DNA of 64,000 bases from Utricularia gibba (lineage: Eukaryota > Plantae > Magnoliophyta): contig NEEC01000015.1 of NCBI GenBank assembly GCA_002189035.1, positions 1,488,001 through 1,552,000 of the forward strand, in the 5' to 3' direction. A program made the translations under genes and the position numbers. This document shows, piece after piece, positions 1,710 to 51,722 of this stretch (its first letter is position 1; each line of letters begins with the position of its first letter). Below the pieces are notes generated by a model. The model was not told the origin of the DNA. It saw only the letters and a list, made by a program, of their open reading frames with translations, and did no database searches.

Positions 1710-2746
1710 TGCAACCTTCTCTTCTTCCCCCTTTTGATGCCTTTCTTCCACAGAAAACCTTGTAATTGTCGCAGTCACGAGGATGAGGATGAGAATGAGA
1801 ATGAGGCGGATTTATACGCATGATTGAGCAGGTGGCAGAGCACAGAAGAGGAGGTGGCAACTTCAAGGCGCCGCGTCTCTTGATAGGATTTCTCTGGTGA
1901 ATGTGTTGTGTTGGTGAATCCGGACAAAATGTGTCGATATTACCAAAAGGATTTCAATTGGGAATTGAGCAGTTCATTTTTGGAACGTGACACATTATCT
2001 TCTATCAATTATCAGCTGCCAACAATCTCTTTATCCTCATACTTTTTACAACTCGTGCTGTGTGAGTGTCTGCGTCTGTGTTTTGCTTTTTTTTTTTAGT
2101 GAGTTAAGTAGCTAAATGAAAAAAGAAAGAGATGGGGAAGCGATTAGACCCACATACTGTGTGTGCTCACAGAATAGAATACAAATGCGATTGCACAATA
2201 CATATGGACCTCCACCTGTTAGCCGGTTTTTTCCCAGAGGAGCTCGCTTCCACTCCAGCTCCCCCATCTGTAACCCATTTTAAAAGCTTTTACAAGGGAA
2301 TTCAATGGATGGGTTTCCCCCATCTCACTCAAAACAGATAAAGTTGTCATCTTTAAGTGATTTCTACCAACAAAAAGAAAACTTTTATAACGCACAGTAA
2401 AAGATAGAACGAGGTTCTTGACTTGAATGTTTCTAGTTAATTGTACCAAGGGAATTGAAGTTTTTTTTTTTTTTCTTGAATACGATGTACAAATTGTAAC
2501 GTAGGGAATTAAATATGATTGAAAATGAAGTAGAGAATCCCTTTATTTCTTTGGAGGGCTCCCCCTCCTCATACTTCGTGGAAATTAAGGTTGGAAGAAG
2601 CCTGAAAAAGATGGATGGTGGGGAAGGGAAGGTGACGCTTTCAATGTCGTTGTACTCATTTCCTGATCCAATGGCCAGGATTTCTCTCTTCATCCACTGC
2701 TCATAAACCTCAAGCTCTCATCCTTTTAACCACCATCCCACACAAA

Positions 2747-3052
2747 ATGAATCATAAGACCATTTTCCATCTTCTCATTCTATCCTTCTACTTTCTTCAG
2801 ATCTTGAGAGGGGTCTCCGATTTGGAGGTTTACTCGGGCAGATCCGTGGAGTTAGATGCGCCCCTCGAATCCGGGAGCGGCAGAAGAAGGTTCCTGGTGC
2901 AGAAGAAATACATCAGTTACGACACTTTGACACGGGACTCGGTGCCCTGTGATCGCCCTGGTGCTTCTTATTACAATTGCAGGGGTCGTGGCGTAGCAAA
3001 TTTCTACAACAGAGGTTGCCAGATTATTACCAGATGCGTCCGGGGAGACTGA
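2747..3052 (+). CDS. RALF: RALF peptide precursor (RALFL24/32-like)
   Basis: Signal peptide, RRFL site-1-protease cleavage site, YISY motif, four Cys (PCDRPGASYYNC...RGCQIITRC). Confidence 0.95.
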   Translation: MNHKTIFHLLILSFYFLQILRGVSDLEVYSGRSVELDAPLESGSGRRRFLVQKKYISYDTLTRDSVPCDRPGASYYNCRGRGVANFYNRGCQIITRCVRGD

Positions 3053-41831: not shown

Positions 41832-43081
41832 CCAAAATAGACATAAAGTAGATCATTTTAATACACTTATCAATAATAATGACAATGTGTTGGGAATTGG
41901 TATGTTTCATTACCTTTTATAAAATTTATAAATATTTTAATAATAAAGAATATAATTGAAATAAAATGTCTAATCAAATCATTGATTAAATTTGGAAACC
42001 TGAAGTCGAACAAATTCACTGTAAATGCAAATAAATAGAGTCCATATAAAAAGAAGCTAATTTCCTGCACAATATTTGCAACTAAACGCATTTTGAAATC
42101 TTGAATCTGATTTGGTTGTTATCTCTTCTTCTTCATCATCGCCTTCATTTTTCATGATAAAAAAAACTTCAATCTTGCTGATAAAAACATTATGAAGAAA
42201 TTGGGTGTGTTTCAGAATGAACTTTCGCAAAGCAAGGTAGAACGGTTATATTTCATTACATGCAACTGCCCTTTTGTCCAACCCACGTTTTCCATATTTC
42301 TACTTGATACCATTTATCTATCATGCATTTCGAAAACTCCATGGATTCACCACATTGGGATTCTCAATAGTGTTGGCGGTTGCATAAAGTATGTGTTTTT
42401 GGATGGTAAGGGATCTCTGGAAAGTTGATTCCGTGATGGGGTGGCTTCAATTTCATTTCATTTGTAGTGAAAAGCTTTGGATCCTCCGATTTCATTGACA
42501 AGTCCCCTTTTTAAATGATGTAATTGAATACCCATATCTTTTGTTGTCAGCCGAAGATTATATGTAGCGTAGCCCGAGTTTTGTCAGCTGAATATCATTT
42601 CGTAGCTTTATAGACCTGCTTTATGGCGTGATATCCAGCAGCTCATTTATGCTTTTTTTTGCTGCATGGGCATTTAATCTGATTAAGAGTGGCAAGAACC
42701 CGTATGATTTTTCAGGCTCTCTCGCCTTTTTATTTATCATCATGATGATGATCAAGTACCCTGCAATATTTTCTGCTCATAATGGCGCTGCTTTATGGCC
42801 CTGGGATTTGCATTTCTTTAAAACAGTAGACTTTTCCATTTTCTAGCATGTTCTTGGCTGCTTCTGGTCTTCTTGGACCTGTAGATTCTATTATGCACCC
42901 AAAAATGTTGATGCAAGATATTAAATATTACGGATGTTTTTCATCAATGAAGAAGGGGATCATTTAATGTGCCCTTCCACAACTGTAGATTCTTGGAGAT
43001 GTTGCTGTTCCCATTTTAGAGTATTTTCCCACTTTTCCTTCACCTTCTGTTGTTTTGGATTCTTTTTCAGTAAGGGAGACA

Positions 43082-44754
43082 ATGGTTGAGCGAGGAGTGC
43101 CGGATAATGGAAGCAAGGGACTGCATACTGTTGCTGAGGTTCCCCACTCACATTTCTCCAGCTACCATCCATATCCACTTCCTATGGCTGAGTATCATGA
43201 TATCGTTGGATCTCGTGATCTTTTCATGGATACTTTGAGGAAACACCATGCTTTTATGGGAACCAAGTTCATGTAACAGCTCTCTCTGTTCTTCATGCTC
43301 TTAATCCCAGTCTTCCCATATCTTCCAGCTTCATGTTACCTTGACAGTTTTGGTTGTTTTGATTCAGGATCCCAGTTGTTGGAGGACGAGACTTGGACCT
43401 GCATCGCCTCTTCGTAGATGTTACATCCCGTGGTGGCATTGAAAAGGTTACTTGCCTGCTACTTTTCTGCCAATCTTCCATGGAGGCTTCCTGTAAACTG
43501 GTTTGCTTTTGTTCTGATCATTTCTCCACAGGTTATGAAGGAGAAGAAGTGGAAGGAAGTAACTGCTGGCTTCAACTTCCCATCATCTGCAACAAATGCT
43601 TCTTTCATACTTCGCAAGTACTACGTTTCGCTGCTTTACCACTACGAGCAAATCCATTTCTTCAAAGCAAAATGCTGGGTTCCATGGCCTTCTGGTTAGT
43701 CCTTCAGACAGGAAGTTTTTATTTGGGTTCACTGTATCGTCTTCCCGGCAATGTATTGTTTTATGATCTTCTCAATGCAGATGCGCAGCAGCAAACTCAT
43801 GTGCACGCTGTGTTACCACCAAGATTTCATTCGCCGGGAGTTGCTGACAGCAGTGCAGGAGCATCCCAAACTGAAGGTTCTCTTCTCAGCTTTTCCGATC
43901 TTGTGAAGCGAATTCATTTTACAAGGCAAGCTTGTCACTTTTTTTTTGCAGTGTCATTCGGATCAGTGGGTGCTCCTGTGGTTGGTGTGATAGACGGGAA
44001 ATTCGATAGCGGATACCTTGTAACGGTGAAGTTCGGAGCGGAAGAGCTGAAGGGTGTTCTCTACCAAGTGCCTCCAGGTTCAGAGACCGATCATCCCGTT
44101 TGGTCGGAGTCAGGCCAGTTGATGAAACGTCGTCGGAGGCGTCGGAAAAAGTCGGAAATCAAGAAGAGGGATCCATCTCATCCCAAGCCTAACAGAAGTG
44201 GCTACAACTTCTTCTTTGCGGAGCAGCATGCCAAGCTCAAGCCTCAGTACCACGGCAGAGACAGAGAAATTAGTAGGATCATCGGCGAGTCATGGAACAA
44301 ACTCCAAGAATCCGATCGAACAGTAAGCCACAATCAATACATTACAACCAGACATCCAAAAGCTTTGTAATTGGCTCATTGCTGTGGACAGGTGTACAAG
44401 GAGCAAGCTCTCAAAGACAAGGAAAGATACATGACAGAGATGGAGGTGTACCGGGAGAAGCTGAGAATTGGTCAGCTTGTAATGAGTGGCAGCGCAGCCC
44501 GGATTCCCGAATCCACCATGTTGCACAATGCAGTAGAAGGTGAGATGATATTTGACCATGAAATGGTCATTGCACAAGTAGCTGCAGACGCAGATGGCAC
44601 ACTCAGGAGTGTGAATGTTGAGATGATGACCGAGGAAGAGGAGGAAGACGAGAAAACAGCCGGGATGACATGCGTGGATCATCATGAAGCGAATCAGCAA
44701 CAGGAACCAGAGAATGCTGCCGAGTATTTGGAACCACCAAGATCTCGGTCCTGA
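43082..44754 (+). CDS. HMGB15: ARID-HMG box protein (HMGB9/10/11/15 family, HMGB15-like), 6 coding exons
   Basis: ARID: IPVVGGRDLDLHRLFVDVTSRGGIEK|VMKEKKWKEVTAGFNFPSSATNASFILRKYY; linker GVIDGKFDSGYLVTV; HMG box DPSHPKPNRSGYNFFFAEQHAKLKP...|VYKEQALKDKERY. A 5'UTR intron acceptor lies at 43070. Confidence 0.9.
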
Positions 44755-45748
44755 ATCGTCCTTCCAAATCCATGACTTGCTTCAAAGCTTGAAATCTTTC
44801 AGTGGCTTGCTTCAAAGCCCTCTGGATAAGTTCTTTTTGTCTGCTTCAGCATGGACTTGACAACCCAGAAATCACCATCGGTATTTAGTGACATGAATGC
44901 ATATAACACAATGGGTTCCATCCCAAAATGAACAAAGAGGAATTTTCAAAATAATAAAATATTTTAGAAATAGAATATATAACGTATCCTGGAGGACTCA
45001 ATTCGGAACAAGAACGAAGCCCCATGTCGAATTGAAAAGGAGCGCGCGTCGTAGCTGGTGTCGCTGCGATTTCTGTAGAAAATCGGAGCTTTGTATGGCG
45101 ATTCACGTTATTTTTCAGGTACGACGGAGAATTCCTGGGTTTCACATGCTGTACTGTTTGTGAGTTGCACTCTGATATTTTGAGCCCGATTTTTAAGAAA
45201 TATTGTTTATGTATTATTCTTGTAATGTGAATTGTTGCCAGTGTGAAGATATTCCTAAGCCTTGTTGGGGGGTTTTTTCTCAAAACGTTCATTTTGTTCT
45301 GGAATTTGTAATGATATAATCACTGGCCTGTATTCTTTACCAGTTTCTTGAGTGATTTGACCATTTTGAATCTCGCCATAGGGTTCTAAGACGGCTTTAG
45401 TGTTGAGGTTACTATTTGGAAAATTCAGATGGCTGCATAATCATAACCGTTTGCATTATTGTTGGTGTATAATATAACTTTTTTTTCACTATAGCGAATT
45501 TTATTTTGCGCATCTGGTGTTGAGTAGGTCCAAGCTGCCTTTTGTTTGATGATTATGTTCAATATTCGTATTTATGGTTTATTTTTATTTAGAGTTTTCA
45601 TTTGGCAGCTTGCTTATACCGAGTGTCAATTTTTTTCTAATGCGATTGAAGTTTTGTCATGATCCGATACATAAATAATGCTGCCTAATTTCTTGATCCT
45701 GTGAACTCCTCTTTGCCAGTGTGCAGATTTTCGATAATCAGTAGAGAG

Positions 45749-48700
45749 ATGGATGTCTTGGGCTTTGAATCTGCATGGCAGAAAGTCCTGCGTTTGATTT
45801 TCATTGACACCCACCTCGGTGCATTTCATATAGTTCTCCTACTTTCCTTTCATCAAGTATATGGCATCAGGCACGCTAAATCTAATTCTCTGGTGTTTAG
45901 TGATTCTTGCCCATCTTTCTTTTTTGCTTGTCTTTTGTTTTCCTGTGAGATGTTTTATTTGGGATCATTAACCCGACACATGTTTGAGTGGATACAGGAT
46001 GGATCCAGTCATTCAGTTGAAGCACACATGCAGAGCCACGGTTCAGGGAGGTTCTTTCTTACTGATGACAATGGTGCGCCATTTTCTAGCATTTTCATTT
46101 AATGTCTTCTTTAATCGTTTGGTATATGGGATCAGTGCCCTGATGTGCTGGTGAGTGTGCGTTAGACATTACTGATTACATGAACCAAAATGATTAATAG
46201 GCAGGCGAATTGCATTCTTTCAACATGTTTCTGTTCGGAAGACTCCATCTGGAAAGAGAAAAGATATCAGACACGGGATACATCTATCCTGGAATATACA
46301 CCTGTAGTTGATTTATACGATAACATTGACATGCCTTTAGAGATATAGATTATATAAAGTAGTACTGGGGATACTTATGGGACTCGTTAGTAATTTTTTC
46401 GTCTTTTTTCTAATGAGTCGTTATTTCAGGGCGTGTGTGCAATTCATTCAGAGTTGATGCTTTGACTCGTTGTTGCCCTGAGAAGGGAGAGCGTTTTTCT
46501 TGTCAGTGAGTCCTCTTTCTGGAAAACACGGTCCTGATTATAGTCTTTAGGCTCTGCCACTGTTTGAACTATATGATTTGATGCGGAAATAGTGATTTCA
46601 ACTTCTTCAAAACTGTATATGCGCTTCAAATGAAAATTTTCATGTAAAAGTAGCGACCACTGATTAATTATTTTGGTTCTGTATTATATCCCTTCTTCCC
46701 TGATTTTTATTTTATTATCATCACTTCAAAGGTGTGTTGTGAATCTTTTCTTTTTTATTTGTTCTAATATCAGTGATGTTATTTCAAGGGAATTGGATAA
46801 ATTTTTACCTTTGCTATTAGGATATCAGAACTTGGCATCCTATAATCATTGATAATTATCCTTACGCCCCTTTCATTTGTTTTGATGTTAATATGGCAGA
46901 GGATGCAATCTCAGTTCTTCTTGTTGCAACTCATATGAGTTCTGTGTTTCATGCTGCTTGAATCCAGCTATGGTAACTTTTGTCTTTCATCCCCTTACTT
47001 TGGTGAATAGTCCATCAAGTTTGTCATAGTCCTTTTTTACCATGCAGACGAGTGAGAAATTGGCATTAAGAACAAACATGGCAAAGCATGCAACTTCTGG
47101 TGATGCTTTATTCAGTAGATAATATTTTAGCTTAGACAAGATGCTTTCTATGCCTCTTATGATGTGAAAAATTACTTCGTTTTTTAGAAAATATTTTAGT
47201 TGCATATTCCTACCAAACACTCCAGGAAAGACCTGGTGTTTCTCTATATGAATCTCACCTGTTTTTTCATGAAATTATGATTCTGAATATCTGTATACAT
47301 GTTATCTGTATTGTCAATATCATTGATTGCAGTAATAAAATTATGTATACAACCAATTAGAATTTTATCGTGAAGGCTTTCTTGTTTCTTGCTTACAGGA
47401 ACATACAAAACCCTTTTTGATTTTTGTGCTGGGAGGTGTCTTCACAATTCGGAGAGTGTGGTAATTATTTAGACTTGTTTATTCTTATGTGGGGTGTGAC
47501 TATTTGTCATACCAACATGTATGAGATGGCATCCCATACGGCATAAAAATTATGAACTATGATTAAGTGTGAGGTTTTGCTTTGCATTGCCATTTCTCTA
47601 TTATGCTTTACTCAAATAATATCATTGCACATCCTCTTTGATCTTTCAGGTGCATGAAAATGCTTATGTGAGTGAATATCATCATTGTTTCTCCATGCCG
47701 TCCAATTTTTCAGGTGAATGTTAAACTTAATTTTGGGCGTGGATGGATTATTGAAAATCAATAGTCTGGATTGTTTTTTATAAGGCAAATGAAAGAGCTC
47801 ACCGGGGTGATATCCCACAAAACCGGTGCATGTTATTGGCATTCTATGTTAAAATTTAGAAAGCCTCATGCACTGGCTCTCTCTTTGAATAATAGAAACA
47901 GTTTTCTGCTTTGTTGTGATGTTGCCCCCTGCTTTTTAACTGGGTTGGGCTTAGGAATGTGAGCAACGCAAGGTTGTATTTGTAAGAATTGAGCAGTTTA
48001 TTTATCTGTTGTACAATAGCTATTATTTGAAGGTGGCAGGTGCAGAATGGTCGAAATTTGGTATTACATGTTAGAAACTTCATATTAGGTACTCAGGAAT
48101 GAAGAAGTTAACATGGTTTCTTTTAAGTAACAGCGAGTTCTAGTTCCAGCACGCACCTAGATGCAAAATTGGCTGGGATCAGTATCATCGTCGGAAGGTA
48201 TAGCAAATGTTGTCATAAATTTGTAAATGATACCAATCCTAAACCTGGATCATCTTTTTTTTTTTTTTTCACGTAGGCAAGGTGACTCATGTAGCACAGT
48301 GTGCAAGGCCAACGGACAGTCTTGCGTTCCCAACAAACTTGCTCTACTTAATCGCTGTGAAGTGTAAGCTCAAAAATTTCCTTGATTACATAATTGCTTC
48401 TGGTCTTGGTCACACTTCATGTGATGATGCTCATATTCAGAAACGGAGGAGCAGCGTAGTTGCCTCTGTTTTTCTTTTTTTACCATCGACGTCACAACCT
48501 TAATCCATCAGAAAATAGTATTAGTCCATTGCTTACAATATGCATCTTGTATTTGAAATGGGCAGTATCCAGAAACATATGAGCTGCAAAGGAGGGTGCT
48601 GGTCAAGCATGGGACGTGACCAGCCAGCTGAAGTTGTTGAGAATGCTCCTGGACATCTGGTATGATATAATTATGCTTGTGTTACATTTTTAAGTTTGCG

Positions 48701-48834
48701 CATTCTTTCAATTTTGAAACTGAAAGCGGGCTGCTTCACAGAAACCCGGAGCATGTGTGTTCACCAACGCAGAGTCCAGTCTTTCCTGTGATGGTTGGCA
48801 TGCCCATACAAAGAGGCTCTGTCCATGCGCGTAA
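45749..48834 (+). CDS. SPRING1/C12orf49 (SREBP-regulating gene protein)-like Cys-rich protein with an extra C-terminal Cys-rich domain; one apparent frameshift and one GC-AG intron
   Basis: N-terminal hydrophobic anchor; CRATVQGRFFLTDDN|GRVCNSFRVDALTRCCP...|GCNLSSSCCNSYEFCVSCCLNP|...FDFCAGRCLHNSESV|VHENAY matches the recalled C12orf49 pattern; then GR|QGDSCSTVCKANGQSCVPN...KRLCPCA*, TAA at 48832-48834. Confidence 0.85.
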
Positions 48835-49307
48835 ACCCGAGATGGATGATTTGCTGTGAGGTTGTGTGGTAGGCGTTCTGTTCTGAGTTACGAAAGTTGT
48901 TTCCAATTAGTTAATATTCAGCCAGCGTGAAAGCACTCATTTTTGCAGCGTGAAACAGAATCGCAGGTTCCTTCCACGAACCCGGTAAATTGAAATTCAT
49001 ATTTGTATGAATTAAAACGTCTTTGAAATAAGCCCGTTGATATGGTTTTATTTGATATATACCGTAAGAAATAATCATAATGTAAAACTGTGGTGCAATC
49101 CCTTTACTTGCTTTTCTTGCTCTCACTGAAACACTGACGACAAGTCTAAGGCTGCACACACGCAATGCTGCTGCAAGACTTGTTGTACTGGAGCTGAGCT
49201 TGTAGCTCCACGCCAACACCTCATTGCTTCATAACAACGGGATCACAGCTAGTAAGCAATCAAGCAATCTAAGGAGAACAAGATGGGAGTAGTTCCCTTC
49301 ATGGTTT

Positions 49308-51197: not shown

Positions 51198-51722
51198 TCA
51201 TGCCACATATGATGAAGTAGAAGAACGTTGCTGTTCATCATTCAGAAAGGTATTGGCAACTGCCATAAAGATCCCGAGGATATCCAGCGCCTGCAGCGCC
51301 GCCGCCTTCACCTTCTCCGGCACCTGATTCCCGAAGCTGCGGGTGCAGTCATTGATATCCAGCATGGCCTCCCACCCCTTCGTCAGCAGGAAGTTAACCG
51401 CCGTCGCGTCGCGGGGAGGCAGCCAAGCACTGCATTGCTTCAGGTCACCAATGGCCTCGGCGCCAAGCGACACGTATGCATCCACGGGCTCGCCCTGTCC
51501 GATCGACTTCACCGTCGTGATGACCCCGTCGGACGCCGCGATCGCCTTCTGAAGCACGATCTCGCCCAGAGTCGTGAGGTCGGCTCCCTTCGACCGCGCC
51601 TCTGATCTGAGTACGCCGCTGCAGGAGGAGGGGTTCGAAGTTTTGCTGCATACGACGTCGATCAAGTCGGCCCGAGCCGTCGTCAGAAAAGCCAACGTCA
51701 GGATGATGAGGATGGAAGCCAT
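51198..51722 (-). CDS. Plant invertase/pectin methylesterase inhibitor (PMEI) domain protein, intronless
   Basis: Signal peptide; IDVVCSKTSNPSSC (C-x8-C); helical body; C-terminal DCTRSF; GC-rich ORF; TATATA upstream at about 51768. Confidence 0.88.
   Translation of the reverse strand: MASILIILTLAFLTTARADLIDVVCSKTSNPSSCSGVLRSEARSKGADLTTLGEIVLQKAIAASDGVITTVKSIGQGEPVDAYVSLGAEAIGDLKQCSAWLPPRDATAVNFLLTKGWEAMLDINDCTRSFGNQVPEKVKAAALQALDILGIFMAVANTFLNDEQQRSSTSSYVA

Follow-up and report, generated by a model that had tools for sequence, protein, structure and literature searches.

The window, a stretch of 64,000 nucleotides from Utricularia gibba (contig NEEC01000015.1), contains an expressed and correctly spliced gene that, from its sequence, is a plant orthologue of animal SPRING1 (C12orf49); this family membership is firm. 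The predicted product of ~275 aa begins with a hydrophobic segment, followed by a SPRING1/DUF2054 ('CREST') domain with 14 Cys and, at the C-terminus, a domain with 10 Cys. The SPRING1 domain is a candidate cofactor of site-1 protease (S1P/SBT6.1), and the U. gibba protein carries a Leu in place of an otherwise invariant Arg that contacts S1P in the human complex.

RNA contigs define a gene of 12 exons on the + strand (45068–49085), comprising one non-coding 5′ exon and 11 coding exons, with a CDS (45749–48834) that runs from the ATG at 45749 to the TAA at 48832–48834. The splicing matches that read by the original prediction in spliced RNA contigs from three studies (X7, X11 and X12), and the X7 contig is identical to the window sequence except for an extra G. 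Every exon is colinear with positions 25–272 of a profile built from 94 plant orthologues. Intron 1 is of the GC..AG type and all others are GT..AG. At intron 8 (48198–48276), pieces of RNA contig flank both sides without a spanning joint because a T-run there was skipped. Three coding SNPs distinguish accessions, all of them synonymous. The features of the gene are as follows.

45068–45118, + strand: minimum extent of the non-coding 5′ exon; an X7 RNA contig has a loose end of 48 letters ahead of 45717, the last 30 of which place at 45086–45115, followed by CAG/GT
ATG 45096, + strand: short upstream ORF inside the non-coding 5′ exon, read from the sequence
45119–45719, + strand: 5′ UTR intron, GT..AG, from the RNA contig and the intron ends
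45720–45870, + strand: coding exon 1, with the ATG at 45749 and a hydrophobic segment that may be a signal peptide or a signal anchor; the exon closes with ...HQVYGI plus the AG of a split Arg codon; RNA joint 45867/45995 with 4 ambiguous letters
45871–45997, + strand: intron 1, GC..AG, with the joint in X7 and X11 contigs
45998–46073, + strand: exon 2, where the series of conserved Cys begins, encoding CRATVQG-RFFLTDDNG; RNA contigs and orthologue profile
46430–46505, + strand: exon 3 (RVCNSFRVDALTRCCPEKGERFSC); RNA joints and an orthologue-profile match of 30.9 bits
46900–46972, + strand: exon 4, the SPRING1 core (GCNLSSSCCNSYEFCVSCCLNPAM); Pfam PF10218 at 30 bits, 8uw8_B residues 108–124, and RNA joints
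47048–47099, + strand: exon 5, a variable loop between two conserved SPRING1 segments; RNA joints, with a weak profile match
47399–47460, + strand: exon 6 (TYKTLFDFCAGRCLHNSESV), containing the Leu codon CTT at 47440–47442; RNA contigs, PF10218 and orthologue profile
47650–47713, + strand: exon 7 (VHENAYVSEYHHCFSMPSNFS), carrying the HENxY motif, the final Cys of the SPRING1 domain and the sequon N-F-S; RNA contigs and profile
48134–48197, + strand: exon 8, a Ser-rich linker running into the beginning of the C-terminal domain; RNA contigs and profile
48277–48363, + strand: exon 9, the first part of the GnT-V-type C-terminal domain, with 4 Cys; RNA contigs and profile
48566–48659, + strand: exon 10, the middle of the C-terminal domain, with 2 Cys; RNA contigs and profile
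48742–48834, + strand: coding part of exon 11, the end of the C-terminal domain (CVF..SC.G.H...RLCPCA), with the TAA at 48832–48834; RNA contigs and profile
48835–49085, + strand: 3′ UTR with an optional intron at 48868–48947; X7 contigs reach 48977 and 49085, with a joint at 48867/48948

The codon split between exons 1 and 2 (AG/G) encodes Arg, in agreement with the '...SAIRKD' of the orthologues, and the hydrophobic segment of exon 1 is predicted to direct the product into the secretory pathway. An alternative 5′ end (ATG at 45861, donor at 45945, phase 0 into exon 2), which would leave the frame intact without correction, was rejected: the RNA uses the ATG at 45749, the GC–AG intron at 45871–45997 and the extra G.

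For homology searches the window exons were used singly, and orthologues were substituted for the full-length protein in profile and fold work; Atlas matches below 0.9 were disregarded. Exon 4 alone matches the Pfam SPRING1 family (PF10218) at 30 bits over profile positions 52–74, and a chance match is excluded because the cut-off is 22 bits. Exon 6 adds 14.2 bits at positions 99–116, colinear with the exon 4 match, and the orthologues score 122–125 bits over positions 2–131. In comparisons with human SPRING (8uw8_B), exon 4 alone returned this chain as its sole match (E 0.03), and the orthologue profile matched human residues 72–195 with an E-value of 7.5e-22. The SPRING1/C12orf49 identity proposed in the original prediction is thus borne out, and the HMM comparison that it suggested as a check proved significant. 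The 14 Cys of exons 2–7, with CC pairs in RCC, SCC and SCC, are invariant in both orthologue alignments, and the HENxY motif is kept in the window protein. Structure prediction was less informative for this part of the protein. AF2 run on 62 angiosperm sequences gave a pLDDT of 49, and with ferns and liverwort added the SPRING1 part stayed below 50 and only the C-terminal domain was confident; the Foldseek match of this low-confidence SPRING1 model (pLDDT <50) to 8uw8_B (E 0.017, rmsd 9.3 Å) is not a meaningful value.

The combination of a SPRING1 domain with a GnT-V-type tail is present in >330 plant proteins, many of which are named in databases as 'SREBP regulating gene protein', 'UPF0454 protein C12orf49 like' or 'DUF2054', so the family is not the unrecognised one that it was first taken to be. 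The sampled sequences indicate that the two-domain architecture is common to liverwort, ferns and angiosperms, and plant SPRING1 is conserved and apparently low-copy. The nearest relatives of the window protein are from Lamiales (~70% identity). It is 66% identical to the consensus, the lowest value in the set, and lies on a long branch, yet it retains all 24 Cys and 77 of the 81 columns that are ≥97% invariant; two of the remaining four are split codons only. Conservation of the Cys-rich core is, in itself, expected under any function. A 2019 preprint places plant UPF0454 proteins beside a 'glycosyltransferase domain'. Our literature search found no plant functional study of the SPRING1 family, and no interaction, localisation or genetic test for any plant member, in keeping with the original prediction, which was aware of no such description in plants.

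The C-terminal domain, which had been noted in the window as an added Cys-rich domain, is homologous to the non-catalytic accessory domain that ends GnT-V/MGAT5. The orthologue profile matches the MGAT5 C-terminus with an E-value of 1.5e-4, and the match to Pfam GT18 (PF15024) is limited to positions 456–557 of 557, with the Handroanthus orthologue P0074 scoring 29.1 bits where the cut-off is 28. AF2 models the tail with a pLDDT of 80–95, and with this model the top 19 Foldseek matches were all MGAT5 (E 8e-7, rmsd 2.2 Å over 97 columns, ~25% identity). The ten Cys of the tail, in exons 9–11, correspond in number to the five disulfides reported for the GnT-V C-terminal domain (PMC6107550). Weak C-type-lectin matches from Foldseek (E 0.3–2, probability ≤0.1) were set aside, and exon 9 found no match in the PDB. 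An exhaustive search with the 30 aa of exon 11 returned plant orthologues together with spurious repeats, among them fish fn3 proteins and a SOD-like protein, which were identified as such by look-ups in Pfam and in clusters.

RALF and GOLVEN peptides, bZIP17/28 and pectin methylesterases are all matured by S1P/SBT6.1, which places the protease upstream of signalling in salt and ER stress, in immunity and at the cell wall. Mammalian S1P is inactive on its substrates until SPRING strips off an inhibitory pro-domain fragment. To our knowledge the activation of plant S1P has been little studied; for this step the plant orthologue of SPRING1 suggests itself as a candidate, and it could easily be tested in Arabidopsis. 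Plants have S1P but are not known to have SREBP, so S1P is what the two kingdoms share. RALF, GLV1 and bZIP17 are substrates of plant S1P/SBT6.1 (PMC13084100). In the proposed mechanism, the SPRING1 domain would bind the mature catalytic body of S1P/SBT6.1 in the Golgi, as in mammals, and would displace the non-covalently held inhibitory fragment of its pro-domain, which would license cleavage of RxxL-type substrates such as RALFs, GOLVEN1, bZIP17 and PME pro-regions. Reasoning from orthology, we regard such a cofactor role as an even call for plants in general, and as a little less probable than that for U. gibba itself. The linkage to the RALF gene of the window, at a distance of 43 kb, is incidental, as the original prediction had supposed.

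The residues at which human SPRING contacts S1P bear on this proposal from both sides. R174, which is central, and V180 are S1P contacts in the human complex, and R174A abolishes binding (PMC11231238). Both positions are invariant across the 94 plant sequences, which include ferns and a liverwort, and Arg occupies the R174 position in all 121 plant proteins that contain the motif, as well as in human. This conservation favours a putative role as S1P cofactor. Plant–human identity, as read off the profile alignment, is ~39% for the pair of segments that are resolved on S1P and ~12% for the unresolved loop. The window protein has Val at the V180 position but Leu at the R174 position (CTT, 47440–47442). 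No base difference is reported in this exon for the RNA contigs of the three studies, and the X12 piece covering 47410–47459 has 0 other letters. A third contact tested in human, R95, is not conserved in plants, being Ala in the consensus and Ser in the window protein. At the level of sequence, the Arg-to-Leu change in U. gibba and the non-conserved R95 count against a simple transfer of the human interface. Given the Leu at the R174 position, the S1P interface of U. gibba would therefore be either rebuilt, for example through a compensating change in S1P, or weaker.

Human SPRING has a juxtamembrane S1P cleavage motif that releases its ectodomain. The corresponding motif, RX(L/I/V)(L/K), is absent from all exon peptides of the window protein, the stem of which reads ...YGIRMDPVIQLKHTC, and S1P-dependent shedding as in human SPRING is probably not applicable here because of its absence.

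Some of these differences would also suit a protein that works independently of S1P, with its Cys-rich and GnT-V-type domains forming a lumenal or secreted scaffold for another Golgi or apoplastic partner (in glycan or cell-wall biosynthesis, for example) and the S1P partnership being an animal specialisation. Such an account would fit the fusion of the GnT-V-type tail in all land plants sampled and its absence from animal SPRING (205 aa in human; the 201-aa chain 8uw8_B lacks the tail). It would also fit the missing cleavage motif, the lack of conservation at R95, the replacement of R174 by Leu in U. gibba while the rest of the protein is constrained, and plant N-termini that appear closer to cleavable signal peptides (...SA/IRKD) than to the human type II anchor. 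However, we know of no alternative partner for the SPRING1 family, whose one known biochemical activity is S1P binding (PMC11231238), and every other plant examined, from the liverwort onward, keeps both R174 and V180. We consider an S1P-independent function unlikely, although it deserves serious weight.

A narrower alternative is that only the U. gibba lineage lost, weakened or changed the ancestral partner binding through the Arg-to-Leu substitution and kept the gene for a residual or new function. The loss of human binding in R174A (PMC11231238), the invariance of this Arg in the 121 plant proteins and in human, and the low consensus identity and long branch of the window protein would all be compatible with such a change. 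On the other hand, retention of every Cys and of nearly all invariant columns, expression in three studies and the synonymous nature of the SNPs between accessions speak against it, and a compensating change in U. gibba S1P is equally possible. On balance this reading seems improbable.

Decay of the locus into a pseudogene is far less probable still. The window DNA has GGG at 46046–46048, where RNA contigs of X7 and X11 have GGGG (the extra G lying behind 46045). In the window as written, 'TCRATVQ(G)' and '(G)RFFLTDDNG' are consequently in different frames; the break between CRATVQG and RFFLTDDNG arises because the G-run is one base shorter than in RNA, and only the extra G brings the first SPRING1 Cys into frame. 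The peptide given in the original prediction agrees with the mRNA and not with the window DNA as it stands, since it passed over this break without comment. The broken frame and the Leu at the R174 position are what a decaying copy with a key residue lost might show, but contigs from two studies restore the frame, all introns are spliced correctly, every Cys is retained and no further disabling changes were seen, which largely refutes this interpretation. The shorter G-run may represent an allele or an error in the assembly; coverage by the independent DNA run X3 is confined to 48274–49100.

The view that the protein is a glycosyltransferase, suggested by the Pfam GT18 match and by 'glycosyltransferase family protein' names in Citrus, Tasmannia and Perilla records, has a negligible probability and is refuted by the domain boundaries, as positions 456–557 correspond to the accessory domain G628–L741, outside the GT-B catalytic fold, and ~100 residues leave no space for a catalytic domain; these names mislead because the tail is the accessory domain.

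We return to the S1P cofactor as the preferred reading. The simplest guess for the GnT-V-type tail is that it would provide a second lumenal docking surface. Land-plant SPRING1 may then be the missing activating subunit of SBT6.1/S1P, with the tail as a second docking function and U. gibba as a natural 'R174L' with a co-evolved interface, a combination that we put forward tentatively and with some doubt. If it is true, a comparison of SBT6.1 from U. gibba with that of other plants would point directly at contact residues. The Leu at an otherwise invariant S1P-contact Arg is in any case a ready variant for structure–function work. Beyond the database label, the analysis adds an RNA-backed gene model, the assignment of the tail to the GnT-V accessory domain and this lineage-specific Leu.

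Three known systems place the protein. Human SPRING1/C12orf49 (PDB 8uw8 chain B, 9csd; PF10218, DUF2054, UPF0454) shares with the plant protein the 14-Cys domain and its CC pairs, the CCxxYE(F/Y)CVSCCL core, the C-R-x-x-S-x-S-V-x-HENxY segment, a hydrophobic targeting segment at the N-terminus and a sequon for N-glycosylation. Plant proteins differ from it in adding the ~100-aa GnT-V-type domain, in their R95 position and in an N-terminus that, to judge from sequence, may be a cleaved signal peptide instead of a type II anchor; the window protein differs further in missing the juxtamembrane S1P cleavage motif and in having Leu at R174. The accessory domain of GnT-V/MGAT5 (G628–L741; PDB 5zib, 6yjq; the last ~100 positions of PF15024) has ten Cys in the same order as the plant tail and the same G-x-SC-x-x-VC ... 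CVF...SC.G.H...R.CPC signature, whereas the plant tail lacks the GT-B catalytic domain and is preceded by the SPRING1 domain instead. The plant orthologues (for example Arabidopsis lyrata XP_002876501, Handroanthus P0074, Sesamum P0072, fern P0180 and liverwort P0187) have the same two domains in ~272 aa, are colinear and contain all 24 Cys; among them, the U. gibba protein is the most divergent from the consensus and the sole one seen with Leu for the invariant Arg.

The SPRING1/C12orf49-like gene is a multi-exon gene on the + strand whose exon structure is set by spliced RNA contigs. We aligned contigs of four public runs to 45600–49100; three RNA studies (X7, X11 and X12) supplied spliced contigs, which confirm the start codon at 45749 where the original prediction had placed it. 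The first coding intron has non-canonical GC..AG ends and is used in both X7 and X11, and the introns between the ten exons that follow it are all GT..AG. Every exon is colinear with positions 25–272 of a profile of 94 plant orthologues.

Features of the SPRING1-like gene (window positions), from RNA contigs and, for the coding exons, also the orthologue profile
ends 45118, +, non-coding 5' exon (loose end of an X7 contig maps to 45086–45115)
up to 45719, +, 5' UTR intron, GT..AG
45720–45870, +, first coding exon, ATG at 45749
45871–45997, +, intron 1, GC..AG
45998–46073, +, exon 2
46430–46505, +, exon 3
46900–46972, +, exon 4
47048–47099, +, exon 5
47399–47460, +, exon 6
47650–47713, +, exon 7
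48134–48197, +, exon 8
48277–48363, +, exon 9
48566–48659, +, exon 10
48742–48834, +, exon 11, coding part
to at least 48977 and up to 49085, +, 3' UTR, optional intron 48868–48947

A short upstream ORF of ∼13 codons lies in the 5' UTR (ATG 45096; 45096–45118 joined to 45720–45737 across the UTR intron) and is not in the frame of the main ORF. In low-depth RNA contigs of X7 and X11, intron 7 is unspliced (47684–48160), through either intron retention or pre-mRNA; seven SNPs and a 1-nt deletion are present there in X11.

In the window DNA, the exon 2 peptides TCRATVQG and RFFLTDDNG occupy separate frames. The orthologue profile aligns to the two successively, indicating that one base is absent relative to the family. 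Both X7 and X11 RNA contigs carry an additional G behind 46045 (GGGG vs the window GGG at 46046–46048), which gives back ...YGIR MDPVIQLKHTCRATVQG RFFLTDDNG RVC...; the X7 contigs match the window everywhere else. The gene is therefore intact in transcripts, and the window GGG is most likely a homopolymer error of the assembly, the alternative being a rare allele; the one independent DNA run aligned, X3, covers 48274–49100. The originally predicted peptide is exactly that of the RNA contigs with the additional G, but it passes over the break in the window sequence without mention. Automatic annotation would be led by this run to truncate or mis-model the gene.

Exon 4 alone matches Pfam SPRING1 (PF10218) with 30 bits (cut-off 22), and exon 6 matches a later part of that profile with 14 bits. 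In the PDB, exon 4 matches human SPRING (8uw8 chain B) and nothing else. An exhaustive search with exon 11 and two word searches of protein records yielded over 330 plant proteins of ∼272 aa with precomputed PF10218 and PF15024, many of them named 'SREBP regulating gene protein', 'UPF0454 protein C12orf49 like' or 'DUF2054 domain-containing'. The 'unrecognised' of the original prediction does not hold for the family. In full-length database searches and AF2 folding, orthologues stood in for the joined window protein. Full-length orthologues score 122–125 bits against Pfam SPRING1, and a profile of 62 of them matches 8uw8_B with E 7.5e-22 over human residues 72–195. We take chain numbering plus 14 to be UniProt numbering, which fits R174 and the modelled segment 76–138 of PMC11231238. 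All 14 Cys of the family are present in the window protein, and the proposed likeness to C12orf49 holds. The gene is a real, expressed and ordinary-looking member of a family already labelled in databases.

The added C-terminal Cys-rich domain of the original prediction is present and is a GnT-V-type accessory domain. Pfam and PDB matches of exon 11 are only to the extreme C-terminus of GT18/MGAT5. The orthologue profile matches MGAT5 chains with E 1.5e-4 over ∼92 residues, and P0074, the Handroanthus orthologue, matches Pfam GT18 with 29 bits at profile positions 456–557 of 557. The tail has a pLDDT of 80–95 in the second AF2 model (of orthologues), for which the best 19 Foldseek matches in the PDB are all MGAT5 (E 8e-7, rmsd 2.2 Å over 97 columns). 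Ten Cys are invariant in the plant tail; in GnT-V, the C-terminal accessory domain (G628–L741) contains five disulfides and is no part of the GT-B catalytic fold (PMC6107550). We rejected a glycosyltransferase identity because the matched part of GT18 lies beyond that fold. Among the orthologues P0101, P0105, P0147 and P0145, some are nevertheless called 'glycosyltransferase family protein', a misnomer given the nature of the tail, and one, from Capsicum, is called 'putative tetrapyrrole-binding protein, chloroplastic'; both names are likely annotation errors. The fusion is old: Adiantum and Ceratopteris, both ferns, and the liverwort Calypogeia carry SPRING1 and tail alike. P0013, a JGI metagenome protein of 220 aa, has the module twice in tandem (...TKRLCPC twice) without a SPRING1 domain, and haptophyte 'GT18 domain' proteins of ∼87 aa form one Atlas cluster (score 0.87), hinting that the module stands alone in protists.

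Pieces of an ARID/HMG-box-like DNA-binding protein gene, judged by eye, lie upstream (∼43055–44754, +). Downstream is a PMEI-like ORF (51198–51722, −) of 174 aa with a signal peptide and an invertase/pectin-methylesterase-inhibitor-like Cys pattern. The predicted RALF precursor with an RRFL site is found at 2636–3049 (+; GRRRFL, then a YISY motif and four Cys), 43 kb away. The neighbourhood suggests no functional linkage with any of the three.

Our literature search on SPRING, C12orf49, DUF2054 or UPF0454 with plants or SBT6.1 (the plant site-1 protease, S1P) found no papers joining them and, as anticipated, no functional description in plants; plants go unmentioned in the SPRING papers, and one preprint notes that UPF0454 adjoins a glycosyltransferase domain in some plant proteins. 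New here are a gene model backed by RNA, the corrected frame, the tail identity and an Arg-to-Leu variant.

This variant is the codon at the position of human R174, which is Leu in the window (CTT 47440–47442). RNA contigs over exon 6 show no differing base there: the X12 piece 47410–47459 has no other letters, and X7 has no differences over the exon. Among the orthologues, 81 columns show at least 97% invariance, and the window protein keeps 77 of them; two of the other four are split codons only, leaving one conservative Leu-to-Val besides the Arg-to-Leu. All 24 Cys are kept, and none of the three coding SNPs that distinguish accessions changes an amino acid. In X11, CTT is inserted in frame at 45838, adding one Leu to an LLL run in the N-terminal hydrophobic segment. 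With 66% identity to the consensus, the window protein diverges most in the orthologue set (nearest relatives in Lamiales, ∼70%); together with the kept columns and Cys, this indicates a gene under constraint on a long branch.

In the human S1P–SPRING structure, R174 is central in the interface, with V180 and R95 making contacts at the periphery, and R174A abolishes binding (PMC11231238); when SPRING binds, the inhibitory A-domain is displaced and the S4 pocket opens. Plant S1P/SBT6.1 has RALF, GLV1 and bZIP17 as substrates (PMC13084100), and the S1P cofactor hypothesis for the plant protein is a sensible one. The window protein contains no strict S1P cleavage motif. Its Leu may reflect either an interface that co-evolved with the U. 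gibba S1P, weakened binding, or another role of the Arg. Plant C-R-H-N-S-E-S-V-V-HENAY aligns opposite human C-R174-T-S-S-Q-S-V180-Q-HENTY; all 121 plant proteins that have the motif carry Arg at the R174 position, and this Arg is invariant in both orthologue alignments (A1 and A2), ferns and liverwort included. Plant–human identity is ∼39% in the two S1P-resolved segments vs ∼12% in the unresolved loop, a contrast that the disulfide core on its own would also predict. Together with the presence of S1P in plants, these alignments lend indirect support to an ancient SPRING–S1P partnership, putative in plants, to which we give roughly even chances. Human R95 is not kept in plants, which have Ala there, whereas the V180 position, like that of R174, is invariant among them.
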